A stretch of DNA of 64,000 nt from contig NW_026920828.1 in the NCBI RefSeq assembly GCF_032062105.1, forward strand, positions 186,001 to 250,000, written 5' to 3'. Position 1 is the stretch's first letter. Every line of letters begins with the position of its first letter. This DNA is from Saccostrea cucullata. Taxonomy: Eukaryota. The position numbers and the translations under genes are program-made. Shown here in pieces: positions 1-61,637 of the stretch. The notes beneath the pieces were generated by a model. That model saw only the letters and a list, made by a program, of their open reading frames with translations, was not told the origin of the DNA and searched no databases.

Positions 1-3000
1 ATCGTGTGATGATAGGACGCTTGAGTGAGTCCAGACAGATAGCACATTCCTCGTCCGATCCCGAGTTCAGCACCATCATCAGAGTGTCCACCAACTTCTG
101 TCTCAGGGCGTCGTTCATCCCACCACTGGATTCAGCCTCATCTTAAACACATCAAATAGTTCTGAGAGGTCCAAAGATGTTTTAATTTCACAGACTGTTA
201 CCAACATAACTTATAATTCTTACAAATAGAAGTTCCTTCTTGAATCCATCAATGATTTCTCCCCTCTCTCTGTGTGGTCCTATGATGGTACTTATCTTAC
301 TGATGGTTTCAAACCTTTATCTCATGATTTCCTCTCATCCATGTGTTTCTTCTCTGATGGTGGTTTATTGCATATAATTTCCTCCCATCTTATATATATG
401 GACTTCCACTCTCTCTGTGTGGTGGTTTGTGGTGGTTTATTACTGAAGGAGTACATACCTTTTATCCAACCTGTTGTGTGTTTGGTTTATTATCCCCGAG
501 CCTTGGCGAGGGGACTTCCAAACACACTGTTTGGTGGTCTATTGAGTTGGATAAAAATCATATCAAACCACAACTCTCTCTGTGTGAGATTCTTTTTATC
601 ACATATTTATGTGTATTTTGTCTTTATTTTTATTACTGAACGTCCTTTACTGGTTACTCTCTCTGTGTGGTGGTCTTTTAACGTAATAAATAATATTACG
701 TAGAATGAAACAGTTCGTACAAAATTAAAAGAAAGAAAGTATTTCAACTCATATTTATTTAATTCATGAATGATAATTTGTTAAAATATATCAAATAAAG
801 TGAAATTTGACAAATTAAGTCATTCTCCCCATCATACACATGTATTTGTTTATTTACGTTACGTCACGCGGCGTAGGAACACATAGTGTTGATACGAAAA
901 CGATATCACATGAGCTATATCAACGGGATAAAGGTAAAAATATGTGATAAAATTCCCTACCATCTTCCTATCTTACGTATAATTTCCTCCCTTCCTCCTA
1001 TCTTATATAATTTCTTCTCCTCCTATCTTACAAATAATTTCCTCCCCTCCTTCTCCTGTCTTACATGACTTCCTCCCCTGCTTCTTTCTTACTTATGATT
1101 TCCTTCATGGCAGCTGCCGCCTTGGCCACCAGAAGAGGATGACAACACATCTGTCTGAGTCTCATCAGAATAGCCAGCACGTCTCCATAGTGATGCAGCA
1201 GAGTGCCTTGTTGGAAATATCTGTAATTAAATTGACAAAAGGGTCATGGGTCACAACTTTCTACTGAGTACTTTGATTAGAGAAAAGCAGAAATTAGTTC
1301 AGTACAAACAGTTGAAATATTGACACATGTTTACGATAAAACATTGTTTCATTCTGTATGGCATCATACACTGACTTACCTACTGACAATGATTTTGCCT
1401 TCATTCTGCATGGCCTCATACACTTACCTACTGACAATGATTTTGCCCTCATTCTGCATGGCCTTGTACACTTACCTACTGACAATGATTTTGCCTTCAT
1501 TCTGCATGGCCTTGTACACTTACCTACTGACAATGATTTTGCCTTCATTCTGCATGGCCTTGTACACTTACCTACTGACAATGATTTTGCATTCATTATG
1601 CATGGCCTTGTACACTTACCTACTGACAATGATTTTGCCTTCATTCTGCATGGCCTTGTACACTTACCTACTGACAATGATTTTGCCTTCATTCTGCATG
1701 GCCTTGTACACTTACCTACTGACAATGATTTTGCCTTCATTCTGCATGGCCTTGTACACTTACCTACTGACAATGATTTTGCCTTCATTCTGCATGGCCT
1801 CGTACACTTACCTACTGACAATGATTTTGCCTTCATTCTGCATGGCCTCGTACACTTACCTACTGACAATGATTTTGCCTTCATTCTGCATGGCCTTGTA
1901 CACTTACCTACTGACAATGATTTTGCCTTCATTCTGCATGGCCTCGTACACTTACCTACTGACAATGATTTTGCCTTCATTCTGCATGGCCTTGTACACT
2001 TACCTACTGACAATGATCTTGCCCTCATTCTGCATGGCCTCGTACACTTACCTACTGACAATGATCTTGCCCTCATTCTGCATGGCCTCGTACACAGATC
2101 TTTCTTCCTCTGACAGCTTGACGTGCTCCACAAACACATTCCTCTGACAATGATTTTGCCTTCACCTTCATGGCCTTGGTTCACTTACCTACTGCAATGG
2201 CTCCCATTAAATGCTGTACACTTACCTACTGACATTTAAATTGATTTTGCCCATTAAATGCTGAACACGCCTACAGCACCAATACAGCATTTAAATTGTA
2301 TTATACAGGGCGATGGCTGCCCATTAAATGCTGAACACGCCTACAGCAATACAGCATATAAATTGTATTATACTGCATGGCTCCCATTAAATGCTGAATA
2401 CCTACAGCACAATACAGCATTTAAATTGTATTATACAGGGCGATGGCTCCCATTAAATGCTGAACACGCCTACAGCAATACAGCATATAAATTGTATTAT
2501 ACAGGGCGATGGCTCCCATTAAATGCTGAATACGCCTACAGCACCAATACAGCATATATTTTGTATTATACAGGGCATGGCTCCCATTAAATGCTGAATA
2601 CGCCTACAGCACCAATACAGCATATAAATTGTATTATACAGGGCGATGGCTCCCATTAAATGCTGAACACGCCTACAGCAATACAGCATATAAATTGTAT
2701 TATACAGGGCGATGGCTCCCATTAAATGCTGAATACGCCTACAGCACCAATACAGCATTTAAATTGTATTATACAGGGCGATGGCTCCCATTAAATGCTG
2801 AATACGTCTACAGCACCAATACAGCATTTAAATTGTATTATACAGGGCGATGGCTCCCATTAAATGCTGAATACGCCTACAGCACCAATACAGCATATAA
2901 ATTGTATTATACAGGGCGATGGCTCCCATTAAATGCTGAACACGCCTACAGCAATACAGCATATAAATTGTATTAACACATGGCTCCCATTAAATGCTGT

Positions 3001-6000
3001 TTCACGCCTACAGCAATACAGCATATAAATTGTATTATACAGGGCGATGGCTCCCATTAAATGCTGAACACGCCTACAGCAGTAATACATCAATTAAATT
3101 GTATTATACAGGGCGATGGCACCCATTAGATGCTGAACACGCCTACAGCAGTAATATAGCATTTAAATTGTATAATACACAAAGAAACATGGTTATAATG
3201 AAGAAACCTGTGAAAACCTTTAATTTTTCAAGGAAGAGCAACTGATAGAATTCCAAGTGAAACAAATTTTGAAAGTGCATGTTAATGTTGCTTTGCTGTT
3301 CTTAGCAGAATTATTTTTACAGAATGAAATAACGTGAGTAAAGTTTGACCATTACTTGATAGCACTTTCATTTCCCTGCTCCAGCGGTCTCTCTATGGCT
3401 CTGGTCCACCACTGTCTGTCAGTGAACGGACTGATCTGGAGAAAGTTTACCAGGGACCAAAGGTCTTTTATAGAGTTCTGAATGGGTGTTCCTTTAAGTA
3501 ATACAAGTATATACAGTAGCCAAAAAAATAAGAGATGTTACATATCACATAGTTTGTGAACAGGCTGGATTCAACATTTAATATGAACAATGTGCATTTT
3601 TCCGTATAGGAAAATATAATGTATATGTAGAATTCTTTGCAACGTCAAACATAACATTGTATTTCTTTACTTTGAATAATTGAGAAACAAACAGGTATAA
3701 CAATGAATTTGTGAGTAATTATATGTTGCTATATTTTTTACCTGTAAGAACCCACTTCCTCTCTGCTTGTAAGGCATATATAGCCTTGGTTTGTTGGGCA
3801 TTGGGATTTCTGATAGCATGCCCTTCATCCAGGACTATCCTCAGCCATTTCACCTTCTGCAAAGCTCCATCACCCTGAAAATAAACTTGTCATGGTCAGC
3901 TCGTACATTGAATTGTTTTGCATTACTTCTATGCTTTGTCTTACAACCATCAATTTTCTAGTGCAATCAAGCAATCATAATATATCCTAGAGTTCTGTAA
4001 TCTGGTGAGTACTTACCTTGGCATCACATGAGAGAGTGGAGTAGGTGGTGAGCACGATGTCTTGTTTGGATAACACGGCTGGATCGCGGATTCTGCTGGA
4101 TCCGTAGTACGTGTAGATATCCAGGTGGATGTTCTCGTGAATATGATCCTCCAGCTGATCCTAGACTCAAGTAACATCAGGGATTTACATCAACACAAAA
4201 AGATTTGTCAAAGAAAAATGTATTGCGGAAAACAAAATGTTAATATTGAAATTTATATCCGAGTTTGTCCGTAAAATTCTATTTAAAATGCAAAATCAAA
4301 GGTACATGTATAAGCAACAAAATTTTTTAACACAAATTCTCTTGACACCTAACTTACAAGCCAGTTACTTAACACAGACAATGGACAGACAATGAGTGTG
4401 GCCCGGGCTCCTGTTGTCGGGGTTCTTCCTGAGAACTTCCCACATTTACTGCTCCCTGGTAAAGACATACACAAGACATATAAGACTTATAAGGCTTCCT
4501 TGCAATAGTTTTTCATTGTTAAAATTAAAATAAGAATTATTTTTTTACAAACACGTTGAGTTCAGTCTAATATTGGGATCTTCACAAATTTGTTTCAACT
4601 TTAAAACTATGAGTATTAAACTAACAGTTGTTTATCAATTTCACTATAAAGATTATTTACTGTGAGTTCTCCAGACTGCTTACAATATACATACCTGGTG
4701 TTGAGCAAGAGGGGAGTTCCTCAGGTCCATGTATATCAGGTAGTTCCTCACCTGGAATATACATGTAACAAACAAGTAGGTCAAGGTGAGTACATTCCAA
4801 GTCTATATTCAAAAGCTTCACATGATCAGATATGCTCTTGCTGTATGTACATACTACATTACTGAACAAATTGTCAATTGATATAAAACCATGTTATTTC
4901 AATGAATTCAAAATACGGTCATAAAAATGAATAAAGAGGAAAAACTTTTGAAGTTCCCCCTATAGGAGTCCTGTTACAATATTCTCTGGCAGACCTCATA
5001 TCATCTTCTCAGTGTTTTCCCTTTATTTCAAAGTAAAGGGTTAGAGATCAGTTGTAACAGGCAAGGGGCTAATGGTTTATGAACAAAATCTCTGTGGACC
5101 TTACAACAATTTTTTATTTCAAAGCGGCTTTTTTTTACATTAACTGTGTTTCAGGGAAAAACTTTAATTTTAAACCTTGCAAAATCTGCTTTGTTTTGTA
5201 GTAGACTGTCCAGGTAAAGTAGGTAAGGATGGGTCAGGAAGGTCATCTGTAAAGACAAATCAAAGGGCAAGAAAACAAGGACATCTAGTCCAATACTTCT
5301 TTTTTTATTTTAATTTGTCCCATTGTTACAATTGTTTCAAAAGATTTGAACAAATTTGAAATTTCATTCTGACAAAATTTTTCCTTGACATCTCATTATG
5401 GCCAAATATAGGTATTACTGTATGATTTGTGATTATATTTTCCCCACATTATTTTTTCACAATTGTTGATAAGCTTTCCAGAAAAAAATTTCCAATCTGA
5501 GACTAAAGTGCTGTGTTAATAAAATGGGGGAAAAAAATTCAATTCACATTTTTTTTTTTACCCAAAGAATCATCTTGATTAAACTGCTTTGCAATAACAC
5601 TTGGGGGCAGCTTTAAAATTTTTAGTATCTTTAAAAAATAGTCCATCAAATACTTGAAGTGAGAGGGAATTTTCAGTACCAGGATTATATGAACACACTA
5701 CACTTACCTGATACAGATGTAATTCTCATTTTCTTTGGAGTCATCATCACTGGCTGACCCTGTACAGTAATCAAAATAGACAATGAAAAGTCAAACATCA
5801 AATAATCAAAGAATTTTGACTTAAAGATCTCTTAACTATCTTAATCAAAACAAATAACTGAGTAAAACTTACAGGAACAAATGGCCTGGCCTCTGGGTTC
5901 AGTCCTGATGTACTGGGAAAACTGTAAAACATTTGTATGAGATTATTATCACATCAAGTGTGCCATAAAATGTTATACAGATACTGAATACAAAGAAAGC

Positions 6001-9000
6001 TGCAGTATCATAGAAATTGCAGCAATGCAGCATTCATTTGTTGAAAAACAAAAAAAGTACTGTCGAATAATTAAATAAATTTCTTATTATAAAAGAACAA
6101 ATTGTTTAAATATGATAAAACTTTTTATTTGCTGAGGCTGTTGGTATCCTCTCCTCTCCTTTGTTTTTCTCATTTTCTGTTTTTGGTTTAGACTCTACTT
6201 GTGAAGAAACCTGTCCCAAGTTTGTTCCAATGACTGTCCTCTCTGTAAAATATAGACACAAAAATGCAATATTTGTTCACCAAAGTCTATGCAATTTAAC
6301 CTAACAATTTTAATACATACTTCTGAAATAATTTTAATCCTGTTTACATGTTAGATAACAACTATGAACTTTGATATGTGATTTCACAATACTTTTTCCA
6401 TGGTTATGATCATCTGTATTAATTGCTGGTTTCATTTAGTACATGTATCTTTGTTTATGCTTATATCCTACATCTGTGGGTCCACTTTTCAAAGCAACAT
6501 TCATCTACTTGCATGCATAAGTAAGAACATATCCACTTGATTATTTCCCATCTTCCAAGAGAGCAATAGGATTACCTGTAAATGACAACTGTGTTCCACA
6601 ATTGGAACAAAACTTCTGAGGAGGGTAGACAATGTTCTCACAAATTTTCCCCTCATCTATTTTGTTGAGACACATCTTGGCATTCTCTATAAATATGTCT
6701 GGGTTAATCTTCCATCCACACATGGTACAAAACTTAAACTCTTTCTCCAGCTTTTGTCCACATCCTTTTCCCTCCGTTTTCAACTTTGGGCACAAGACTG
6801 CATTAATTTGCTCATTATCTGAAAAATCAAAACACTGCATATAATTCCATAATAAAACTTTTAATCTTGAAATCTTTTCCCCTATTCAAGTTTCAAACTA
6901 GAAATATGTCCATAGGACATGAATGCCCCGCCAAGAGTATATTAGTAAAGCAAGATGAAAATTTGTATGTGTATAAAATTTGATCAGAATATCTTGAATA
7001 GTGATGCAGTTGAATTGCTTACATTAGTATATATCAGCATGTGAAGTTTGACACTAATTTCATAAAAGTGAGGTCAAGGTCAAAGGATTTGCCAAGGTCA
7101 AAAACTGTTGATTCAGTTGAAAAGCTCTCATCAGTAAGTATCAGCACATGAAGTTGAAAAAATATTATGGTTTCTTTAAAACTGACTTAAACACAAATGG
7201 ATAAAAGTGAGGTAAAGGTCAAATGAAAGGTCACGGTAAAAAAATGATGATACACTTGAAATGCTTACCTCAATATCTATCAGCTTATGACATTTGACAC
7301 TAATTTAGGAAAAGTGAGGTCAATGTCAAAGCAAAGGTCCAGGTCAAAAATGTTGATGCAGTTGCATATTTCTCATCAATATGTATCAACAACATATCAA
7401 GTTTGATAAAAATACAATTTGAGAAAAATGACGTCAAGGTCAAATAAAAGGTCAAGGTCAAAATTGTTGATGCAGTTGAATTGCTTACATCAGTATGTAT
7501 CAGTATATGAAGTTTGACACTGATTTAGGAAAAGTGAGGTCAAAGGTCAAAGCAAAGGTCAAGGTCAAAAATGTTGATGCAGTTGCATATCTCTCAACAA
7601 TATGTATCAACATATGAAGTTTGATAAAAATATCTAGAAAAGATATCTTTAATTAAAACTGACTTAAACACAAATTGATAAGAGTGAGTTCAAGGTCAAA
7701 TAAAAAGTCAAGGTCAAGATTGTTGATGCAGCTGAATTGCTTACATCAGTATGTATCAGCATATGAAGTTTGACACTGATTAAGGAAAAGTGAGGACAAG
7801 GTCAAAGGTAAGGTCAAATGTTGATGCAGTTGCATATCTCTCATCAAAATGTATCAACATATGAAGTTTGATAAAAATATCTAGAAATGATGTCTTTAAT
7901 TAAAACTTAAACACAATTAGATAAAAGTGAGGTCAAGGTCAAATAAAAGATCAAGGTCAAAATTGTTGTTGCAGTTGAATTGCTTACATCAGTATGTATC
8001 AGCATATGAAGTTTGAAAAAGATTTAAGAAAAGTGGGGTCAAGGTCAAAGGAAAGGACAAGGTCAAAAATGTTGATGCAGTTGCATATTTCTCATCAATA
8101 TGTATCAACATAAGAAGTTTGAAAAAATATTTTGAAGGTATCTTTAAAAGTAAGCGAAACACTAATTAAAGATAAGTAAGATCAAGGTCAAAGAAAAGGT
8201 TGATGCAGTTGAATAGCTCTCATCAGTATGTATCAACATTATTATTATCATCTTGAATGGTATGTTTAAAACTGAGTTAAACACCTATTTAAGAAAGGTG
8301 AGGTCAGGGTCAAAGGAAACATCAAGGTCAAAAATGTTGATACAGTTGCATACTCTCATCAATATGTATCAGCATATGAAGTTTGATGAAAATATCTTGG
8401 ATAGTTCTTTGAAACTTAGCTTTGAACAGAGCTAAACGCAAAGTGTGACGGAAGGACAGACGGAAGGATGGAAGGGCAGAAGGACGGAAGACGGACATGA
8501 CAAACACTATATGCCCCGGCCATATTCATGGCGGGGCATAAAATTTCTTAAAAGATAGTCATACCAGCATTAGTTACAGTCCCTCCAGTACTTTGATTTC
8601 CTGTTTCTGCTACACAAGATGCCTTATCTTTACCATCTGCAATGGGGCTGCTCTGATTCCTTTCTGATTCTTGTACCTTATTGTCGCAAATAGGTGCCCC
8701 CTCTTCCCTCCGTGCTACAGGTGTCCCCTCCTCCATCTGTGGTACAGGTGCCCCCTCTTTCCTCAGTGGTACCTGCTGCCCCCTGCCTCCACCCTCTACC
8801 AAGACACTGCCAATCTTGGTAGTGTCCTCCCCCTTAAGATCCTGTTGATCTTTTCCTATATCCCCTGTAGAGATTTTGTCAATCCTTATCGTGTCCTCAA
8901 TCAGTTTATCCATCTGTCCCTCACATTTCTGTCCACCAGATTTTAGGAGTTGTTTCCCCTTCCCTTTACCACGTCTTTGACCTTTTCTTGCTGTTTCAAT

Positions 9001-12270: not shown

Positions 12271-15200
12271 TGTTATCAATCTACAAACCAAAAAAAAAAA
12301 ATTATTAATTATCATTAAGTTACAATGGTGAAAATTTGCATTTATTTTGGTTCCAAAGGAAGATTAAATTCAAAATTCCAATTAATAATTAATTTGTTCA
12401 AATATATAACAAATGAATTTTTGATGTATATATGGCTTTATGATTATCATTTTTTTTTTACTACGATGCAAAACTGACATAGGTACATGTATGTGTATTA
12501 ATTATTTTCTAAATTTATTGTTCATTCAAATAAGTAGTAATAAAATGTATATCAAGAAAAAAATGAAACTGCAAATAGGCCTAATAGTTCATTAAAAAAA
12601 AATGCATAAATTCAGCTGTCAATCAATTCTAATTATCTCTAACCATGCTAACAGTGTGCGTTCAGGCGTGAAGTGATTTCCTGTTACCCAGTGTAATTTT
12701 CACACCTTTCTGTGCATTACGTAAACAGAGGAGAGACTGGCTAATTTGCACGGTTTTTTCATGCTTCTTGTTCAAGGTCCGTGTTGAATGTTCTTTTGTT
12801 TATATTGGAGTTATCAATTTAATATAATGTAAAATATATCGAGTTGCTAGGTCCCCTGATTACCTAAAACATTATCTACAAGTATATTTATTTCTTGTAA
12901 AATACAGATATGGAGGAATTAATAATTTGAATTACGGATTTCGATTTAGACAAAAATAAAAAAACCCCTGAAATTTCACTGTTTTTTAAATACGGTGTTT
13001 AAATTTTAAGTTGTGGACCGACAGTCCACCTACTACAGAACGTTTGGTGGACCTTTCAATTTTTTGGTGGACTCGGGCCACCGGTCCACCGTTAGTGTCG
13101 AACCCTGTATACTTACTTACTTATCCTCTCCGTGCCTCGGAGGACGCATGAGGCCGTGTATATGGGTATTTTATGTCCTTCATATTGTACATGTACATGT
13201 ACAAAGATATACATATAGCATACAACAATGACAAATATTAAAAGGTTCTTATTGATATGTTGCCTCCATGTACTACATGTATAATACAGTACTCATTTGA
13301 ATATCTTATACCCATTTCTTAACAAATATATACTCCGCTATAAGTCAGTCTGCCTGTAAGTCGGTTGTACTTTTGAAGCTAATATTAGAGGGATTGACCT
13401 TTTAAAATACCAGTCTTTTAATAACTCGCCTATAAGTCAGACATAGAGTTTATGACCAAAGTTAAACTCCCCCAAATCTGACTTGTAGGTGAGTATATAT
13501 GGTATGTCTCACCTGAGCTTTGCGCTGCAATCGTAATATCTTGGACTGACGAACTTTCCCAGCCACTGGAACAGCAAGAGGTTTTCCATCTTTGAAGTTT
13601 GTCAAGATCAAAGCAATAGTTTGCAGTGTCTTTCCAAGACCCATGTCATCAGCCAGTATTCCTAGATTTAACAAATACATGTGTAAGATTACAAAAGTCT
13701 ACATTGTTTGTCGTTGTTGTTGTGGGATTTCATGTTTAAAATTAACTTCTAAATGAGACCTATTCCAACCTCCCAACACACTCTTTGGTTTAGTTTTGTA
13801 TACCTACCTCCACAAACACTCTTCGGCTTGGTTTTGGTTGTGAAGATCGTCACCGAGTTGAAGTACTGTCCATTCCTGTTCTCCCAGAAAGGCGGCAGTT
13901 GATTCCCGTTCTCTCTCTGAATCATCCAGTGTAGAGCCTGCTTCTGGTGTTTATACATAGCGCTGGATATCGCCTTCAAAAGAAATGTACTATCCATCGA
14001 TCCTGTGATTCACATTAATCTGTAGAGTTCACATTTTATAGGTTCATTGGAGCATGTTGTAAGTTGTTGTAACTTGTTTCAAAAACAGGGTCACTATGCT
14101 TATAAAGAACAATTTTACATTTTTTTTTTTAATATATTTTACAGCATAGGGAATGAGACTCAGAATGCTATGTTCTCCATAGGTTTAATGATTTGTTCAA
14201 AAGTTACAATTTAAGGAGATGTAAATTTATGGAAAGGTGAGCCACAAATTCCACAAAAATGATGATTCTGAAGTATTGTCAGAAAGATTTGATTGCCGAT
14301 ATCCAAGTCCTTAAGTTAAAATTTCTTTTTAATCAATCAATAAACAAAATATATTCAATGCCATTAAGCAGCCATCTTCAAATTTCTTCTAGTGTGCATT
14401 TATGAAACCAATTTACCAATATTCACTATTACACTGTACCTCTGTTGGCTCAGATGGGGTTGTTTTATCACCCTCATTCAAACTCTCAAACAATTTGTCA
14501 AGTTCATTCTTCACCTTTAAAAACAAAATCATTTTTTATCATTTATTAGCTTGGCAAAGTCAGTGTGGTAAGTCTTTTGCCACTTGTAGTGTTGGACATT
14601 AACATCAGTCAGTTATTAAGTCACAGACTAAATACTTTCTAAATAATAATATCTGTGGTTAACATGACCAGACAAATAAAAATTCTTGGTAAACAAAATA
14701 AACTACTGACATCTTATTTAAATGCATTTGAGCTTTCTAATTTCTTGGTGGGTATGTAGGCAATACAAAGTCAATTCGACCCTTACCTGTACAATATGAA
14801 GTGAAAATTTTAGTGATCATGATTTAGTGTAACACATATAAAAAAAAAAGATGCATGTTGGATGTAATGTACAAGGAAAAAGGAATAAGATTCAGGAATA
14901 AGATAAAACTTTCTGATCACAAGATTTCAAAGATTCTAATGAATTTGTGGAATAAAACACTCTGAAAATGTTTTTTTAATCTTTTTTTTCATTTCAAACA
15001 AAAGTATAAAAAGTTTAATGCAATAAAATGTCATTTTAATGAAGATAAATAAATAAAAGACAGCATTTTCTGTATAAAATGGTTTCTTCCCTCTTGACAT
15101 AAAATAAAGTTCTCAAGAAACCAAAAGTAAGCTAAAGACTGGACACTGCCACTATTACCTCTGCTGGCGTGAGGAATGTTCTCCTGTTTGACACCACTCC

Positions 15201-16735
15201 ATACATCATACCAGAACTGGGCCCTGGTGCTGAGGCCCCACCCATAGAACCACCGACCCCACCCACAGGATCGCTGGCTACCTTCATCTTGATACCACTT
15301 CTCTCTAGCCTGGCGATGGTTTGCTGCTTGTGTTCTGGTTTTCCCCAGAGAGTGATGTCTACAGGCATGCTGAACTGGTTCTGACTCCCAAACGGAACGA
15401 TCCTGTCATTTTTCATAACAATGAAATCAATTTACCTTCTTTTAACTTTAAAATTTTGATATTTCACTTTACAATTTTTTGTACAAGCATCAGATGTTTA
15501 ACTTTAAGTATCTTCTTGGCTGGTTAAGATTGTACATTTTTTCTTTATATTTCTTGATCATAACAGAATAAGTTACCCCTCTAATCTGGCCCAACCACTG
15601 TCCATAATTGGTGCTAAAGCTGCAGCCAGCTCTCGTTTAATGTGTCCTACTTGTTGACGGACAACATTGACCACTTTTATGGCATTTCTATCAAACCTAT
15701 TTTGTGGTTCTCTCTCCAAAGCCACCATTTCATTATTGTTCACCTAGAAGTAAAATCATCAGTCTAAGGCCTAAAATAAAATTAAGTTTGCAGTTGCCTA
15801 CCGACCCACTGAAAATGCACCCGACCCAAACTTTTTTTTTAGCCATTTGGTAATTTTTTTTTTTTTTTTCAATTTTTCAGAATATTGAAACAGTTTCGTT
15901 TTCAAATTTTGACACATTTTTTATCAACCAGTGGTTTATAACAAGAGGTGAGCTTATTCATGTCTAGTAGGTGTATGAAAACCTCTTTTATTTGTTATCT
16001 AACAAAAATCTGATTTTTTTTTCAAAAAAAAAAAGAATTATAATGCCTACCTACACCCAGTCTAAAAATTACAGGTCGGCAACTGCAAACACAGAATTTT
16101 TTAAGCTTGGCCTAATACAGTGTGTCAAACAATATTCCAGCACTAAAATAAGAGGGGACATTAAAACCAGAGGACAAGGTCTCAAGTTCCACCCTGATTA
16201 CAATATAACAGGGGGAAACCCACTGGATCTGGCTCACAGGGACAACTCTGGTTTTTAACTAGTATTATTAAAGTTATGCAATATTCCATAGAAAGGTTAT
16301 CTATTTCTAAGACTGTTATAAAATAATTTGTAAATGATAAACTTACGATTCCTGTATAATACCGAATCCCAACAATGTTACCACGGAGACTGCCGAACAG
16401 AATTTCATCATCCAAATAATCGTGACCCATCTCATCATCTGAATCCGAATCCGAGTCGGATTTGTTCCACGGATCATAGCGGTATGGCAGATAAAGCCAG
16501 GGGGCTCTCGCTTCTCTTTCGGTCATCCATAAGCGCTCAGCTCTCGGTTTTCTAGGACGCTTTCTCTGACGGGCCTGATAAAAGAAAAAATCCATATAAA
16601 GGCCTATATAGAGTTCACAAGTATGTTCTACACAAGTGTCATACTTAATGACATTAAACTTACTGGTTGAAATGTTGCCCGTGGAAATGAATTTCTGTTT
16701 GAATTCTGCCTGCTTGTCTGCTTAGTTCTTGCCAT
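1..16735 (-). CDS. HLTF: Helicase-like transcription factor (Rad5-family SNF2 ATPase with HIRAN and RING domains), multi-exon; 3' part lies beyond the left edge of the window
   Basis: GT-AG exons on the - strand: 16664-16735 (MARTKQTSRQ...), 16347-16574, 15577-15743 (HIRAN: VALEREPQNRFDRNAIKV..VGHI), 15159-15402, 14440-14514, 13808-13973 (YKHQKQALHWM), 13513-13661 (motif I GILADDMGLGKT), 10453-10663, 10005-10119, 9436-9515, 8565-9038, 6576-6818, ~6123-6242, ~5873-5921, ~5708-5759, ~5176-5246, 4695-4751, 4358-4455 (ATLIVCPLSVLSNW), 4017-4160 (DIVLTTY), 3742-3874 (WLRIVLDEGH), 3356-3491 (GTPIQNSIKDLWSL), 2052-~2270 (middle garbled), 1093-1220 (LMRLRQMCCHP), 1-141 (SGSDEECAICLDSL, start of RING). 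These motifs closely match vertebrate HLTF. Phases between the 5176-5246 and 4695-4751 exons do not fully reconcile. Confidence 0.95.
1325..2090 (-). repeat. 48-bp minisatellite (~15 copies) made of an HLTF exon 3' end plus its 5' splice site
   Basis: Unit on the - strand: TACAAGGCCATGCAGAATGAAGGCAAAATCATTGTCAGTAG|GTAAGTG. Confidence 0.95.
2245..3177 (-). repeat. 66/69-bp minisatellite (~13 copies) made of an HLTF 3' splice site plus exon start
   Basis: Unit on the - strand: TATAATACAATTTATATGCTGTATT(GGT)GCTGTAG|GCGTGTTCAGCATTTAATGGGAGCCATCGCCCTG. Confidence 0.93.
6896..8541 (+). mobile_element. Non-autonomous Helentron-type (HINE/Pearl-like) element with an internal AAGGTCAAGGTCAAA tandem array
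   Basis: ATGCCCC motif near both ends, internal ~120/240-bp repeats, GACG/GAAG microsatellite and 3' hairpin ATGCCCCG..CGGGGCAT, followed by an A-run. Confidence 0.65.
10724..13107. mobile_element. TIR element (hAT-like CAGGG ends) containing a nested satellite-bearing element
   Basis: Perfect 17-bp TIRs CAGGGTTCGACACTAAC / GTTAGTGTCGAACCCTG; subterminal GGTGGAC motifs; no clean TSD. Confidence 0.75.
10986..12270 (+). mobile_element. HINE/Pearl-like element carrying ~6 copies of a 166-bp satellite (resembles oyster Cg170-type satellite)
   Basis: Start AACAAGAGGCCC..GCTCACCTGAG; period of exactly 166 (GATTTGAA at 11411, 11577, 11743, 11909); ACG/ACA microsatellite; 3' hairpin GCTCACTTGAGCC..GGCTCAGGTGAGC. 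Confidence 0.75.
13328..13498. mobile_element. Short degenerate MITE with TA-flanked inverted ends
   Basis: TATATACTCCGCTATAAGTCAG ... CTGACTTGTAGGTGAGTATATA imperfect inverted repeat. Confidence 0.4.
15768..16112. mobile_element. ~345-bp PIF/Harbinger-like MITE, copy 1
   Basis: GGCC termini with TAA 3-bp TSD; internal inverted GTTTGCAGTTGCC/GGCAACTGCAAAC; second copy at 20610-20956. Confidence 0.75.
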
Positions 16736-17031
16736 CTGAAAGATAGATAAAATTCTTTTTAAAAGATGAGCAAGAGGCCCATGATCAAGAGCCTTATAGG
16801 TCAACTGAGCATCATGCAACTTCTTTCCAACAATTTAATTTGGTTTATGTTATAAACCAGAGGTCATGGCATTTTCAATTTTGAAAGTGGCACCATTGCT
16901 CATCATAACTATACACTTAGCATATTTAGTTTGGTTACTAAATACTGGTACCCAGAGGCAGAGTAGGGTAACAAAAATTTATGCATTTCAAATTAATCAG
17001 TATAATATTCAACAATAATCAGTAGTGCCCC

Positions 17032-18132: not shown

Positions 18133-18421
18133 CCCCCACCCCACAGGAACCCCTGACCCTAGGTCCACACACTTCATAAAAATATCATTGGAAAGTAGCT
18201 CTTAATTGCTGTTACTTACAAATATAGCAATTATTCAGAATTCAACTCTAACTGCTAGTGCTGTCTGTGCATACTATAGCAGTTCTGTTGCATATAATTT
18301 CCTTAATTTTCGGATTAAAATGCATTTACGTGCCTTTAAAATCCATTTCCTAATCACGCACACAAAACACCTTTAAAAATAACCCAGTTTGTAACATGTA
18401 ACTTGCATATTAATAAGATAC

Positions 18422-18490
18422 CTTCTTCGATATTCCAATGCCGCCCTTTTCACTGCTGCAGCAGTTTTTGATGTTTCGCGCGAATTTTTC
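18422..18490 (-). other. HLTF: Probable non-coding first exon (5' UTR) of HLTF
   Basis: GAAG|GTATCT donor at 18421 on the - strand, no ATG in the exon, CpG-containing. The coding ATG at 16735 directly follows a TTTCAG acceptor, so an upstream UTR exon is required. Confidence 0.55.
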
Positions 18491-18726: not shown

Positions 18727-21700
18727 ATGGCAGACGCCGAACAGTCGCTTGTGAATGGTGTCACCAATTTAAGTGTTAATGACAATGATAAGGGCAAAGA
18801 GGGCGGAGATGAATTTGCAAAAGGCTGGGGATTTAGTCTCCCCGAGCTCTACAAACTTGCTGTTCGATTTTTTAAAGGTACTATATCTATACATTGACAA
18901 TATCAGATTCGCTTTTGACTCTAACCCGGTTAACCCCTCTCGGGTAAAATAAATGGCAAGAAATCTGTGATTCAGGCTGTAGACAATAGTTAATCATTAA
19001 GGTGTGATTTTATTCATGGAAATCAGAAACATGCATTTACAAATGTAGGGCTTAAACTCTCTCAAACTAATACATGCAGGTCCAGTATACCACAATCTCT
19101 TGATTTAGCTATACTAAGATAGCTTGATTTAGCCTTTTCATCACCTTTTTTTCTTAAATGTGTTAATTTCTCTGCATGTATAAAAAGTCACATCTTGGTA
19201 CAGTGGTGATATACACTTTTGAATTCCTCTGAAAATAATGCACAGTCTTTGACAAATCCCACGAGTCCGATGCCTGGGACCTGGTAAAGTTGGAAGTACG
19301 CTTGTGAAAACTGCACACTTACAAGCCAAAAGGGCATGTAAATATAGAGGATTATCCTTCATATTGTTTAATATGACGTACTTTCACTTTTGATTTGAAT
19401 GAAGAATTCATTCATAGGATGTTTCATTTACATGAAGTAGTGATGGAACGATTGTCGGCGACAATCGATTGTCGGTCGTTAGAAGCTCTTCGATGCTACT
19501 AATCGATTATAAAATAAATGTCGCCGACATCGCTAACAAATAATAAAATTGTCATACTTTAATTTTATTACCAAATCCAAGTGCAAAGAGCATAAAAGTA
19601 GTGATGAATGTTGAAAACATGGAAGGATCCCGTGTCTTGTTGATACTTTTACCGCCATGATTAAATATGGGGTTAGACTAATACCAGGAAACGGTAATAT
19701 TGCAAGTAAAGGAAAACATAATTAGTCTAGTCAATCTTTAAACGTAATTATAACCATAAATACAAGTCTAACTTCTGGATAATTACTTTTACAACTTGCA
19801 ATTTTAACTAATTAAAACTAATTTTAAGAAATAAATACGTACATGTATTTAAATGAAAGGTGGGGCTGATATCAGTAAAATACCCATTGCATGGACTTTA
19901 TAAAAAAAAAATAAATTCCCATTCTGTTTCAATAGTCTTATATTGTTTAAAGTAAACACAATACTATTTTCCACTTTTTAAAAAAGAAATTTCATTAACA
20001 TTTTTTAATATTTTATGTAAGTAAATGATTTTTTTGTAAAAGTCTGACAGAAATCTGAATAAGTTTTAACTTTTCTATATTAATTTCATTAAAGTTCAAA
20101 ATTTCGATTATAATCGATTATTAATCGATTATGCCCAGTCGATTATTACCGATAATCGATTATGATTTTTTCCCGATTCCCCATCACTAACATGAAGTAC
20201 ATAAAAATTAAATGACAGTAATATGTTGACGGTGGGATCATTTGTGCGAGCGCAGATATTTAATATACCCCACACAACAAGTTGCAGGAGGTATAATGTT
20301 TTTTACCCTTCCATCAGTCAGTCAGTCCATCAGTCCTGTTTTTTTTTTTTTTTTTTGTCAGCGCAACTCCTCATAAACCACTGCACAGAATTTCCTCAAA
20401 CTTTGCAGATATTTAGGACACAATGTGTAGATGTGCATATTACCAGGAAATTCTGATTCCTTAATTTTTTTCTGGGAATTTCTACACTTTTCAACTTAGA
20501 TTTTTGGCCATGCCTCGAATATAGAGATGAACAGTTTTTCAGTGCAATTCCTCTTAAACTGCAACACAGAATGTTGTCAAACTTTGCAGATATTTAGTAC
20601 AATGTGTGAGGCCAAGCTTAAAAAATTCTTTGTTTGCAGTTGCCGACCTATAATTTTTAGACTGGGTCGGTAGGTAGGCATTCTTTTTTTTTTTTTTTGG
20701 AAAAAAAATGGATTTTTGTTAGATAAGAAATAAAAGAGGTTTTCATAGACTTACTACACATGAATAAGCTCAACTCTTGCATTAAACCACTGACTGATAA
20801 AACAGAAGTCAAAATTTGAAAAAGATACAGTTTCAATATTCTGAAAAATTGAAAAAAAAAATTAAATTACAAAATGGCTAAGAAAAAAGTTTGGGTCGGG
20901 TGTATTTTCAGTGGGTCTGTCGGCAACTGCAAACAAACTTATTTTTATTTTAGGCCTGAAGATATGCATATTACCAGGAAATTCCCATTCCTATATTACA
21001 TGGAAATTCCCATTCTTTTATTTTTCCTGGCAATTTCAGCACTTGGAGTTTTGCGGGAGTCTGGGGTATGTGAGCTTGCTCACTTTTTCTTTCATATAGT
21101 TTTAAGTTAGACTGGGCTTGTCAAACAGCACGTGACATTTTGTGCATCTAGACTCTGACGTCAGATGAACTCATATGTAAGCTGCATTACTCTCACCAGA
21201 ACATATCTTTAACAAGCGATGCATTTTGGGTCCAGAGTAACTGTGGAAAAATATTAATTTGGAACAATATGCAAAGTCCAGATTTTCTCTTCGTCCAGGC
21301 ATTGCTTTAAGAGCTGCACCTACTACCAACACCAATATTAGTAAATATGCTTAAAATTTGTTCACCTAAAGTGAAGGAAAAAATGAAATTTTTCAACAGT
21401 TTATTCTGTTCCAATTACCAAGAAATGCTTTTGCATTGGAGTAAAACAAAGCCTACACCAGAACAATAACAGTGTGGCAATAGATCGATAAAAAATGATG
21501 AAATACATGATAAAATTCAGGGTATGTGAATATTTGTTCGGGCTACTGTAATTGGTAAGTAAACCTGCCGAAGGTGCCTTGGGCAGGTTCTGAAAAACAA
21601 GATTTGGTGAAGTTTCATTTCAACAGTTAGATTTGAATTTCAACCAACTACCCCAGTATTGTTGAATGAAATAGCTACAATACATGCCAACAGTTATTTT

Positions 21701-46954: not shown

Positions 46955-47641
46955 ATGGACGGAAAGTTGAGTGCGGACTTGTTGAAAGTTCACAATGCTA
47001 ATATTAAGAGAGAACACACACCAGAAAAGGGCACGATGGCATCTTCAGCCAGCAACGTGAGCGGTCCAACAACGACCAGACTGAGTATGAAGAGCAGGAT
47101 TCTGGGGGGTGGGGGAGGAGGGAGTCAGGATAGATCGGACAAACACTCGGAAACAAGTAGTAAAATTTCCCTTGTTCCTGGAAACAGATTCTCCAGAATC
47201 CGGACAAAGTTAAGGTTACATACCTTGTTTGGTGGTGCTTTATCAAAACGGTCGGGATCCGAAAGGGGAGGACCGACGAAGGCACTGGAGAATACATACA
47301 AAGTGGGTCCGGAGGACGGGACTAAATTCAATCCTCAAAAAGGAGAACAGATCATTTCTAATGTGCTTAATATGTACTTGAAGGATAGAGTTTACGACGA
47401 GAGAAAGTTTCCACAGTTGTGTAAAACCTTGTCTGATTTAATCAAGGAGCGTGTTAAACTCTCAGGACTCAAACGGTATAAGGTGATAGCGTATGTTATG
47501 GTGTTTGAAAATAAGAAGCAAAGTATTCACTACACGAGCCGGTGTCTTTGGGAATCGAACCTCGACAACTACGCCTCCGCGACGTACAATGGAACTGACT
47601 TCGTTGCCATAGGAACTGTTTTTGCCACTTATTACGACTGA
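46955..47641 (+). CDS. Tctex1 domain-containing protein (TCTEX1D1/DYNLT5-like dynein light chain), intronless, copy 1
   Basis: 228-aa ORF with ENTYK..P, RYKVIAYV, SRCLW...DNYASATY and VFATYYD motifs of the Tctex-1 fold; low-complexity N-terminus. Confidence 0.9.
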   Translation: MDGKLSADLLKVHNANIKREHTPEKGTMASSASNVSGPTTTRLSMKSRILGGGGGGSQDRSDKHSETSSKISLVPGNRFSRIRTKLRLHTLFGGALSKRSGSERGGPTKALENTYKVGPEDGTKFNPQKGEQIISNVLNMYLKDRVYDERKFPQLCKTLSDLIKERVKLSGLKRYKVIAYVMVFENKKQSIHYTSRCLWESNLDNYASATYNGTDFVAIGTVFATYYD

Positions 47642-50267: not shown

Positions 50268-50918
50268 ATGACAACAAAGAGTGACTTTCCAACCGGAAGA
50301 CGCAGCAGTGTGACTTTTAACCTAAATGATGAGGCCTTCCGGATCCGGACTCCCAGTATGGGAAAGAGAGAAAATCAACAGATCCGGGTGTCCAGTTCGG
50401 GAAAAGTGAAAACGGAATACGCCCAATCCGACACCAGCAGTGTAGTCTCCAGCTCACTTCCAAAGAAGTTCCACAAGCTTAAAGGACCAAATCGCCTGCA
50501 ACAGAATTTAGACCGGATCAAAAGTCCTAGTGGGTGTGTGCGACCTCAACATAATGTTAATTATGAAAATACGTACAAACTATCCCCGGATAAAAACACT
50601 GCTTTTGATGAATCAAAAATCTCAGAAATTATTGAACGCATTTTGTCAGAAAACCTTAAGGACGAATCATACAACCACGACGACTGTTTAAACTTGTGCG
50701 TCCGTCTTGCAGAATTGATTAAAGATGAGGTCAAAGCGACTGGAATTCCCAGATATAAATTGATTACACACGTTGTTATATTTGAAGACAAACGACAGGG
50801 TTTTCAATATGGTAGCCGGTGTCTCTGGAACCCTATCTTTGACAATTTTGCTACGGCATCGTACTCAGGGCCCGAATACAGGGCCGTGGGGGCATGTTTC
50901 GCCACTTACTATGACTAA
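50268..50918 (+). CDS. Tctex1 domain-containing protein, intronless, copy 2
   Basis: 216-aa ORF with YENTYKLSP, PRYKLITHV, SRCLWN..DNFATASY and FATYYD motifs. Confidence 0.9.
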   Translation: MTTKSDFPTGRRSSVTFNLNDEAFRIRTPSMGKRENQQIRVSSSGKVKTEYAQSDTSSVVSSSLPKKFHKLKGPNRLQQNLDRIKSPSGCVRPQHNVNYENTYKLSPDKNTAFDESKISEIIERILSENLKDESYNHDDCLNLCVRLAELIKDEVKATGIPRYKLITHVVIFEDKRQGFQYGSRCLWNPIFDNFATASYSGPEYRAVGACFATYYD

Positions 50919-59969: not shown

Positions 59970-61637
59970 TTAACGCGCTAGGCGCCTTTTGATGGTATAG
60001 GTAAAGAGACACTTTTCAGATGCTCGCATCTTATCTCGTTCCCTTGACACATTTTGCCAAAATACGGTTGAATTGATTTGCCTGATGTATTTACACTGTG
60101 GAGACAATAGAGCATGCTTATAACGAGGGTCATCCCACTTCATCCAGTTCCTAAAACCATGCCCACAGTAGAAACAACACACTTTATCTTCCAGTCTGGT
60201 GTAGTATAATCCAGCATCCGCCATCTTTAAGGCGTGTGGGAGTTCCCCGTGGTTCCAAGTTTGGTATGAGATAAGTCGATCCAGAAATCTTACAAATCGT
60301 AAGTTATAGACCCTGCGCGGAGTACTCTTCCCAAATCTACTCTGATAAATGAAGTCAGGTGTTTTATTCTGTCGTATAAATGGACAGTTGTAATACCATT
60401 TAGCATGTCGCTTCCAGGGGTCCTCATGTGGCTTAAAGTCCCAGTCCACTCCATTACAATAAAAACAACGCAAAATTACACCATTCTGTTCACAAAAGTA
60501 CCCTGCTTCAGCGAACTCCTCTTTGGAAGGTGGCGGACTGGCATGCCAAGTTTGAAAACTGTCCAGCCTTGCATCGTAGGAAACGAATTGTGGATGAGCC
60601 GCTATCTCTGGAATAATTTCCACCAATGCGTCATGAATCAAGAATCGACATTTGTCTCTTATGTTTCGGGATTTCGGAATACCCTCGACATTGTACATTA
60701 TATCGGTCAAGTAATGATCACTTCTTGCTCTTAAAACCATTCTCATTAATTCATTGAACTCTTTAACGTCACTCTCAGTTTCTCGACATATCAAATCATC
60801 TTCCAGAGATACCTCTAATGTTACACTTGTTAACTCATTTGGTAATTCTCCCATGTTTTGCCTGAAAATGTTTGCTATTTGATAGGGCCTAGAGGCATAT
60901 GTTCTAAAGGCATTCATAGACAAGGAAACAGTTTCTCCACTGATTTGAATACCCAAAGTTTCCACGGCGAGATGGAAAGCCATCGATCGACCACTTTGGT
61001 TGAGAAAGTGGCATAGATTAAGCGCCATTGGGGTCAGAAGAAACGCATGCACTTCTTTTATTTGGGCTTCTTTCAGCTCTTTTTCAAATATGTTTGCAGC
61101 TGCTTCTAGGGAATTTACAGCAGTGTCATTGTTGGGTTTCGAGGTACTTTGAGAAGTTTTTGCATTTGAATCAATCGACCCAACAAGTATATCCATCCAG
61201 TTTTTTGGGTGGTCATAAATATTCAGGGGTTTAACGAGGACCAATACCTCTGGAAGCTCACATATTTCGAGTCGGACTGGAATCAAACAATCCGGATCAT
61301 CCTCTTTGTCCCTTGACAAGTCTTCATGCACTGCGTAATTCGCCCTCAGTAGACTTTTCTTACATGATAAGAATTCGTTGTTGAGAATAATGACGATTTT
61401 TAACGCTTTTCTCATATTTTGAAGGACCGACCCTAGAATGTTTTCTCCAGGGCACACGTCTCTCTCCTCATAAAAACATATAAATCCAATCTTTTCTAAG
61501 TTTCCCACCGTTTCTCGTACCCAAGCTAAAGCCATATGATGATAAATAAAATAAATGTGATGGTACTTTCCATATCGTAAGACTCTTGTATGACGAGCAA
61601 CTGATGGGACATATCTTGTTAACATTGAGGCTTCCAT
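59970..61637 (-). CDS. Intronless IAP-like protein: N-terminal TIR domain, uncharacterised middle region, two BIR domains, no RING
   Basis: 555-aa ORF. TIR-like box motifs (HIYFIY..WV..L...GF.C...RDVCPG.NI...V..NM...KIVIILNNEFL...LIPVRL). Two perfect C-x2-C-x16-H-x6-C BIR signatures (CFYC..DPWKRHAKWYYNC; CFYC..DPRYKHALLSPQC), each preceded by RL.S[FY]QTW and [EA]AG[YL][FY]. Confidence 0.88.
   Translation of the reverse strand: MEASMLTRYVPSVARHTRVLRYGKYHHIYFIYHHMALAWVRETVGNLEKIGFICFYEERDVCPGENILGSVLQNMRKALKIVIILNNEFLSCKKSLLRANYAVHEDLSRDKEDDPDCLIPVRLEICELPEVLVLVKPLNIYDHPKNWMDILVGSIDSNAKTSQSTSKPNNDTAVNSLEAAANIFEKELKEAQIKEVHAFLLTPMALNLCHFLNQSGRSMAFHLAVETLGIQISGETVSLSMNAFRTYASRPYQIANIFRQNMGELPNELTSVTLEVSLEDDLICRETESDVKEFNELMRMVLRARSDHYLTDIMYNVEGIPKSRNIRDKCRFLIHDALVEIIPEIAAHPQFVSYDARLDSFQTWHASPPPSKEEFAEAGYFCEQNGVILRCFYCNGVDWDFKPHEDPWKRHAKWYYNCPFIRQNKTPDFIYQSRFGKSTPRRVYNLRFVRFLDRLISYQTWNHGELPHALKMADAGLYYTRLEDKVCCFYCGHGFRNWMKWDDPRYKHALLSPQCKYIRQINSTVFWQNVSRERDKMRASEKCLFTYTIKRRLAR

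Follow-up and report, generated by a model that had tools for sequence, protein, structure and literature searches.

H3 N-Terminal Mimics and the HLTF Family

Proteins that imitate the N-terminus of histone H3 have been described previously, and include PAF15, VRK1, and PDPK1. The H3 N-terminal mimicry proteins (H3TMs) VRK1, PCLAF, BCL11B, TSHZ1, and MEF2C carry an N-terminal iMet-Z-R-X-K motif on a disordered tail of a nuclear protein, and such mimics bind PHD/Tudor domains and NuRD and are methylated by SET7/9, MLL1, and PRDM9 in vitro, although K4me3 was not found in vivo even for the human mimics (PMC8166343). PAF15/PCLAF, a PCNA-linked replication-fork protein, has an H3-like free N-terminus (VRTK) with two ubiquitin-acceptor lysines at H3-like spacing, and the UHRF1 PHD finger reads both ARTK of H3 and VRTK of PAF15 (PMC7060239). 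PDPK1 has a Met-cleaved ART start that acts as a WIN motif, diverges from H3 at position 4 (T), and works in acetylated form, binding WDR5 about 400-fold better when acetylated (PMC7871196). Vertebrate HLTF, of the Rad5 family, has a HIRAN domain, a split SNF2 ATPase, and a RING finger, with an N-terminus of the MSW/MAW type and no H3 motif.

The HLTF gene of the oyster Saccostrea cucullata begins with M-ARTKQT-SR. In comparison with the H3TMs, the match to H3 is exact over six residues plus R8, rather than being restricted to R2 and K4; it sits on its own exon, appears to descend from an H3 gene, and is found on a SNF2/RING fork-reversal enzyme, a Rad5-family translocase and E3 ligase, whose vertebrate orthologue lacks it. 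In comparison with PAF15, the HLTF tail has no conserved acceptor lysines and coexists with an intact PAF15, and in comparison with PDPK1, it keeps K4-Q5-T6. Literature searches found no report of an H3-like tail on HLTF, in a collection of papers from which most subscription journals are missing.

Identification of the First Coding Exon of HLTF

The window analyzed here is a stretch of 64,000 nucleotides of S. cucullata DNA (NW_026920828.1, positions 186,001 to 250,000), and its features are summarized in Table 1. The sequence-only reading had proposed that a 72-nt exon, TTTCAG|ATG...CCA|GTAAGT, is the first coding exon of HLTF and imitates the H3 tail, and this observation was confirmed. The exon translates to MARTKQTSRQNSNRNSFPRATFQP, in which residues 2-9 match H3 at 7 of 8 positions and the H3 K9 position is Q. 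It ends in phase 0, and after an 89-nt intron the following exon continues in frame into the HIRAN domain. Window exons were searched one by one, while full-length comparisons used database proteins of relatives. An exon-by-exon map with Ostrea edulis HLTF covers residues 1-1133 up to the window edge, with many exons at 75-94% identity, and no second copy of the gene was found in the genome. The RING finger and C-terminal helicase lobe, which lie beyond the window edge, are present in the oyster orthologues. The exon does not belong to a histone H3 variant gene, as it splices into HIRAN and not into a histone fold.

Table 1. Coordinates of the features discussed in the text. Positions are those of the window unless another source is given; L numbers denote metagenome loci and G000:C10122 an oyster genome contig.
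Position	Strand	Feature	Supporting observation
16664..16735	minus	First coding mini-exon of HLTF (24 codons, phase 0 end) carrying the H3-like module	Same stand-alone exon of 24-29 codons in O. edulis, C. virginica, P. maximus, and M. edulis; spliced in M. gigas RNA contigs
16715..16735	minus	M-ARTKQT, Met plus H3 residues 1-6	Invariant in all pteriomorph HLTFs seen
16688..16714	minus	Fast-evolving linker (H3 positions 7-15)	R/K8 kept, K9 replaced; in-register H3 leftovers in relatives
16670..16687	minus	Second conserved block FPRATF ([FYL]-[PQS]-R-A-[TV]-F)	Column conservation in 8 species; RAAF in Sinanodonta; YPRATF in a Maverick-type ORF
16736..16741	minus	Splice acceptor directly before the ATG (5'-UTR intron)	Acceptor 0-7 nt before the ATG in oysters, scallop, mussel, abalone, and also Mercenaria
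16347..16574	minus	Next exon: basic cluster (NLS-like, inferred), acidic stretch, start of HIRAN	89% identity to O. edulis over residues 37-102; single copy in the genome
15577..15743	minus	HIRAN domain exon	PF08797, E 1.9e-15; HLTF HIRAN structures in the PDB, E 1.4e-16
15159..15402	minus	Exon completing HIRAN	Exon-by-exon map
13513..13662	minus	SNF2 ATPase Walker A exon; the gene continues past the left edge of the window	PF00176, E 3.2e-8; exon-by-exon map
6559-6798	minus	Internal HLTF exon rich in CxxC pairs (zinc-ribbon-like), inside the long insert of the ATPase	69% identical in O. edulis
1427-1909 and 2316-3144		Tandem repeats in the HLTF gene that copy pieces of coding sequence	Match O. 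edulis residues 1028-1044 and 984-998
18422..18490	minus	Probable non-coding first exon (boundaries inferred)	Donor-like GTATCT at 18421; no open in-frame ATG upstream
18727..18880	plus	First coding exon of ACBD3, head-to-head with HLTF; bounds the HLTF promoter	81% DNA identity with C. virginica, where an ACBP/GOLD gene is the divergent neighbour
59970-61637	minus	Intronless ORF resembling TIR plus two BIR domains	Judged by eye
46955-47641 and 50268-50918	plus	Two Tctex-1-like ORFs	Judged by eye
G000:C10122:161765	minus	Oyster PAF15, start MVRTKAD	First intron of about 8 kb
L044:2855-3517	minus	ORF of a Maverick/adintovirus-type element	Begins MARTKQT and carries YPRATF
L196:8001-8663		ORF of the same Maverick/adintovirus-type element	Begins MARTKQT and carries YPRATF
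L041:2634 onward	plus	ORF with an intact H3 tail (first 19 residues) fused to a non-histone, vWA-like region	Judged by eye
L042:728 onward	plus	Divergent H3 variant with RAVF in its tail	The search pattern selected for this motif

A genome-wide pattern search for M-ARTKQT gave 24 hits, whereas the reversed control pattern gave 0. Of the 20 hits fetched as loci, 19 are H3 genes or fragments and one is this exon, while the other four have the canonical-H3 match string, making the exon the only non-histone M-ARTKQT among the pattern hits. The expected frequency by chance is about 1.2e-8 per start codon, or 3.5e-4 over 30,000 genes. M-ARTKQT starts do occur by chance in very large collections, for example in some phage ORFs; the MASTKQT hits in that search are explained by the codon pattern MGN, which also admits Ser codons.

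The start at this Met is shown by RNA contigs in Magallana gigas and is inferred for S. cucullata. Two M. gigas RNA-seq contigs contain the exon spliced to the next one, after 30 nt of leader that hold an in-frame TAA and no ATG. In the window, the only in-frame ATG (18664) between ACBD3 and the probable donor is cut off by stop codons. About 240 nt separate the ACBD3 ATG from the probable first exon of HLTF, and the head-to-head arrangement is conserved in C. virginica. RefSeq models of O. edulis, C. virginica, M. gigas, M. angulata, three scallops, M. edulis, and M. trossulus begin at this Met, although shorter isoform models starting at a later Met also exist. In addition, two of three Mytilus galloprovincialis RefSeq isoform models (P0163 and P0166) add 7-11 residues upstream of MARTKQT, which would mask the free N-terminus, and if these are real, alternative splicing could switch the mimic off. 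The tandem repeats within the gene could offer duplicated splice sites. The CxxC-rich internal exon is not known from vertebrate HLTF.

Conservation and Distribution of the N-Terminal Motif

The same six residues open HLTF in four oysters, three scallops, and three mussels. In pairwise comparisons over six species, codons 2-7 showed 38 synonymous and 0 amino-acid differences, against 101 amino-acid differences in codons 8-17; synonymous change is saturated while exactly A1-T6 is invariant. These results show that the motif is conserved under purifying selection across Pteriomorphia as sampled here, which left out ark shells and pearl oysters. Conservation across related species had been set beforehand as a test of the histone-tail reading, and the motif passed it. 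The possibility of a neutral relic, a chance match, or a gene-model artefact is refuted by this conservation across three orders, together with the spliced transcript in M. gigas and the low chance expectation per proteome, and is considered very unlikely.

Position 8 remains basic, whereas position 9 is Q, N, or A in all species; the ARKS/T motif of H3K9-type mimics such as G9a and LIG1 is therefore absent. The second block, [FYL][PQS]RA[TV]F, is as conserved as the mimic itself. In a gene tree built without the N-terminus (quick tree), the species with the motif form one clade (SH-aLRT 92), and the gene tree matches the species tree. Bivalve orders radiated from the early Ordovician (PMC10294476), from which it is inferred that the motif is several hundred million years old.

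Imparidentian clams, Solemya, limpets, Physella, Lingula, amphioxus, hemichordates, echinoderms, and vertebrates lack the tail; cephalopods and abalones other than Haliotis asinina were outside this sampling. H. asinina HLTF begins MARTKSG, and that of the unionid Sinanodonta begins MGRNKQ, with RAAF near the same spacing, the unionid motif resting on one gene model. The amphioxus HLTF start MPRRF (P0023, P0024, and P0028) resembles the SNAG H3-mimic start MPRSF, and the ancestral HLTF N-terminus may already have been a ligand. A metagenome scan for further bivalve HLTF exons found none.

Origin of the Motif

In pteriomorphs the module is a stand-alone mini-exon, while in Mercenaria and Haliotis the first coding exon is longer (49 and 110 codons, respectively). 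The decayed linker holds H3 residues in register, namely S10-T11-G12-G13 in Mytilus, R8 and G13-K14-A15 in Mizuhopecten, and P16-R17 in Argopecten, the last of which depends on a one-residue deletion. Together these cover 9 of 11 positions in 7-17 (shuffle p 3e-4), whereas slid registers give 0-4, and positions 10-15 alone give 6 of 6 (p 3e-4, or 5e-3 under a conservative null). The test was devised after seeing the data, but it favours, without establishing, the capture of an H3 5' end over convergence. In this view, the 5' end of a histone H3 gene (about 17 codons) became a new first coding exon of HLTF in the ancestor of oysters, scallops, and mussels, and selection then kept H3 residues 1-6 and a basic residue 8, while the rest decayed and K9 was lost.

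Alternatively, the motif could have the same function but have arisen by point mutation from the old M-G/P-R start. Outgroup HLTFs start MGR/MPR, Haliotis has ARTK at the front of an ordinary exon with no H3 leftovers, and Sinanodonta has GRNKQ plus RAAF. However, in-register STGG (Mytilus) and GKA (Mizuhopecten) in a region not under constraint, and the dedicated mini-exon, argue against this alternative, which remains possible but less likely. The splice acceptor next to the ATG was considered as a sign of H3.3 exon capture and rejected, because Mercenaria and Haliotis have it too; it is an ancestral HLTF feature. Haliotis sits with gastropods in the tree and keeps an outgroup-like GGW, so its ARTK is probably a separate gain from the old start, whereas the unionid form may be either an eroded homologue or a third gain.

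A metagenome scan for the two-part motif returned one contig family of Maverick/adintovirus type (pPolB, A32-like ATPase, and chromodomain integrase). Its 220-aa ORF, structurally close to GasderminX-family clusters, starts MARTKQT and has YPRATF eight residues later. The search pattern itself demanded MARTKQT and RA-x-F, so only the frame and the YP and T residues are extra evidence. This is a single element, 48% identical in integrase to the Mavericks of the S. cucullata genome, where homologues match only residues ~95-211. Scans of viral sequences found no two-part motif and no relatives of this ORF.

Predicted Role of the N-Terminal Tail

The sequence-only reading had inferred that HLTF docks on, or is modified by, the H3K4 machinery through histone mimicry, and this interpretation was partly supported. 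The identity of the gene (HIRAN and SNF2 exons, orthologues, and gene tree), the start codon, which is the annotated one in nearly all relatives, and the absence of the motif from vertebrate HLTF are all in agreement with it, while binding or modification by H3K4 readers or writers remains an inference from sequence. The probable H3 origin, the loss of K9, the RA[TV]F block, and the likely independent ARTK of abalone are additions of the present analysis.

AlphaFold2 modeling of O. edulis residues 1-235 predicted almost no structure for residues 1-80 (pLDDT about 50-60 for most of this region) and a confident HIRAN domain (pLDDT over 90), suggesting a disordered, accessible tail. Met is expected to be removed before Ala, which would leave a free ARTKQT end, and the motif meets the three PHD-ligand rules (PMC8166343). 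Retention of residues 1-6 with loss of K9 points to the K4 branch of histone-tail proteins. The tail could thus be a ligand or substrate for PHD/ADD-type readers, WDR5-SET1/MLL writers, or, when unmethylated, NuRD. H3K4 methyltransferases, CHD4, and HLTF all act at stalled forks, and SETD1A, MLL3/4, and CHD4 govern fork protection (PMC8287955). Because HIRAN binds the nascent 3' end, HLTF would carry an H3K4-type docking or modification site to the stalled or reversed fork, and K4 methylation could switch partners there. The sequence, the splicing in M. gigas, and the conservation are established by the data and the disordered tail by prediction, whereas Met removal is deduced from established rules and every functional step, including binding and methylation, is inferred; this explanation is held with moderate confidence. 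As the RA[TV]F block has no H3 counterpart, the real partner may instead be a specific protein that reads both blocks.

A PAF15-like route, in which the unmodified tail docks on the UHRF1 PHD finger at replication forks and HLTF is ubiquitylated or co-recruited with the maintenance-methylation machinery, was also considered. The genome has SRA-domain (UHRF1-type) exons. However, UHRF1-PHD needs residues 1-4 only, yet Q5 and T6 are invariant, and no lysines are conserved at the H3 K14/K18/K23 spacing: lysine positions differ among species, with none between 5 and 27 in C. virginica or in the S. cucullata exon. Oyster PAF15 still has its own H3-like end, so replacement of PAF15 by HLTF was rejected, and the UHRF1 route appears unlikely. 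A role outside the H3K4 machinery is also conceivable, such as WDR5 WIN-site binding after N-acetylation as in PDPK1 (PMC7871196), binding of T3-phosphate by Survivin in mitosis, or nuclear import and chaperone binding. An N-terminal ART is a WIN motif, haspin-phosphorylated T3 is recognized by Survivin, and importins bind H3 tails. Nevertheless, WIN binding does not need K4-Q5-T6, and the separate basic cluster in the next exon can supply import, so these roles are regarded as doubtful.

A more speculative possibility, considered unlikely although compatible with the data, is that the fork-reversal enzyme acquired a real piece of histone H3 by exon capture and uses it as a portable, methylation-switchable H3K4 mark at nucleosome-free fork junctions, with a dedicated reader for the two-part motif (ARTKQT ... 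RA[TV]F), and that the same solution was reached again by abalone HLTF and copied by a Maverick/adintovirus-type element.

The exact copy of the first six residues of H3, probably taken from a histone gene and kept unchanged since oysters, scallops, and mussels split early in bivalve history, suggests that proteins that read histones also act on this fork-repair enzyme. This is an apparently unreported case of a host protein gaining a histone mimic from a histone gene, with a closer match to H3 than the mimics consulted here. Anti-H3K4me and anti-H3T3ph antibodies may cross-react with HLTF in these bivalves. H3K4 methyltransferases and CHD4 control the protection of stalled forks, but whether the relevant substrate is nucleosomal H3 or a fork protein is hard to separate; bivalve HLTF is a natural fusion of the H3K4 epitope to the enzyme that binds the nascent 3' end, so that the link becomes accessible to study with one peptide and one point mutant.
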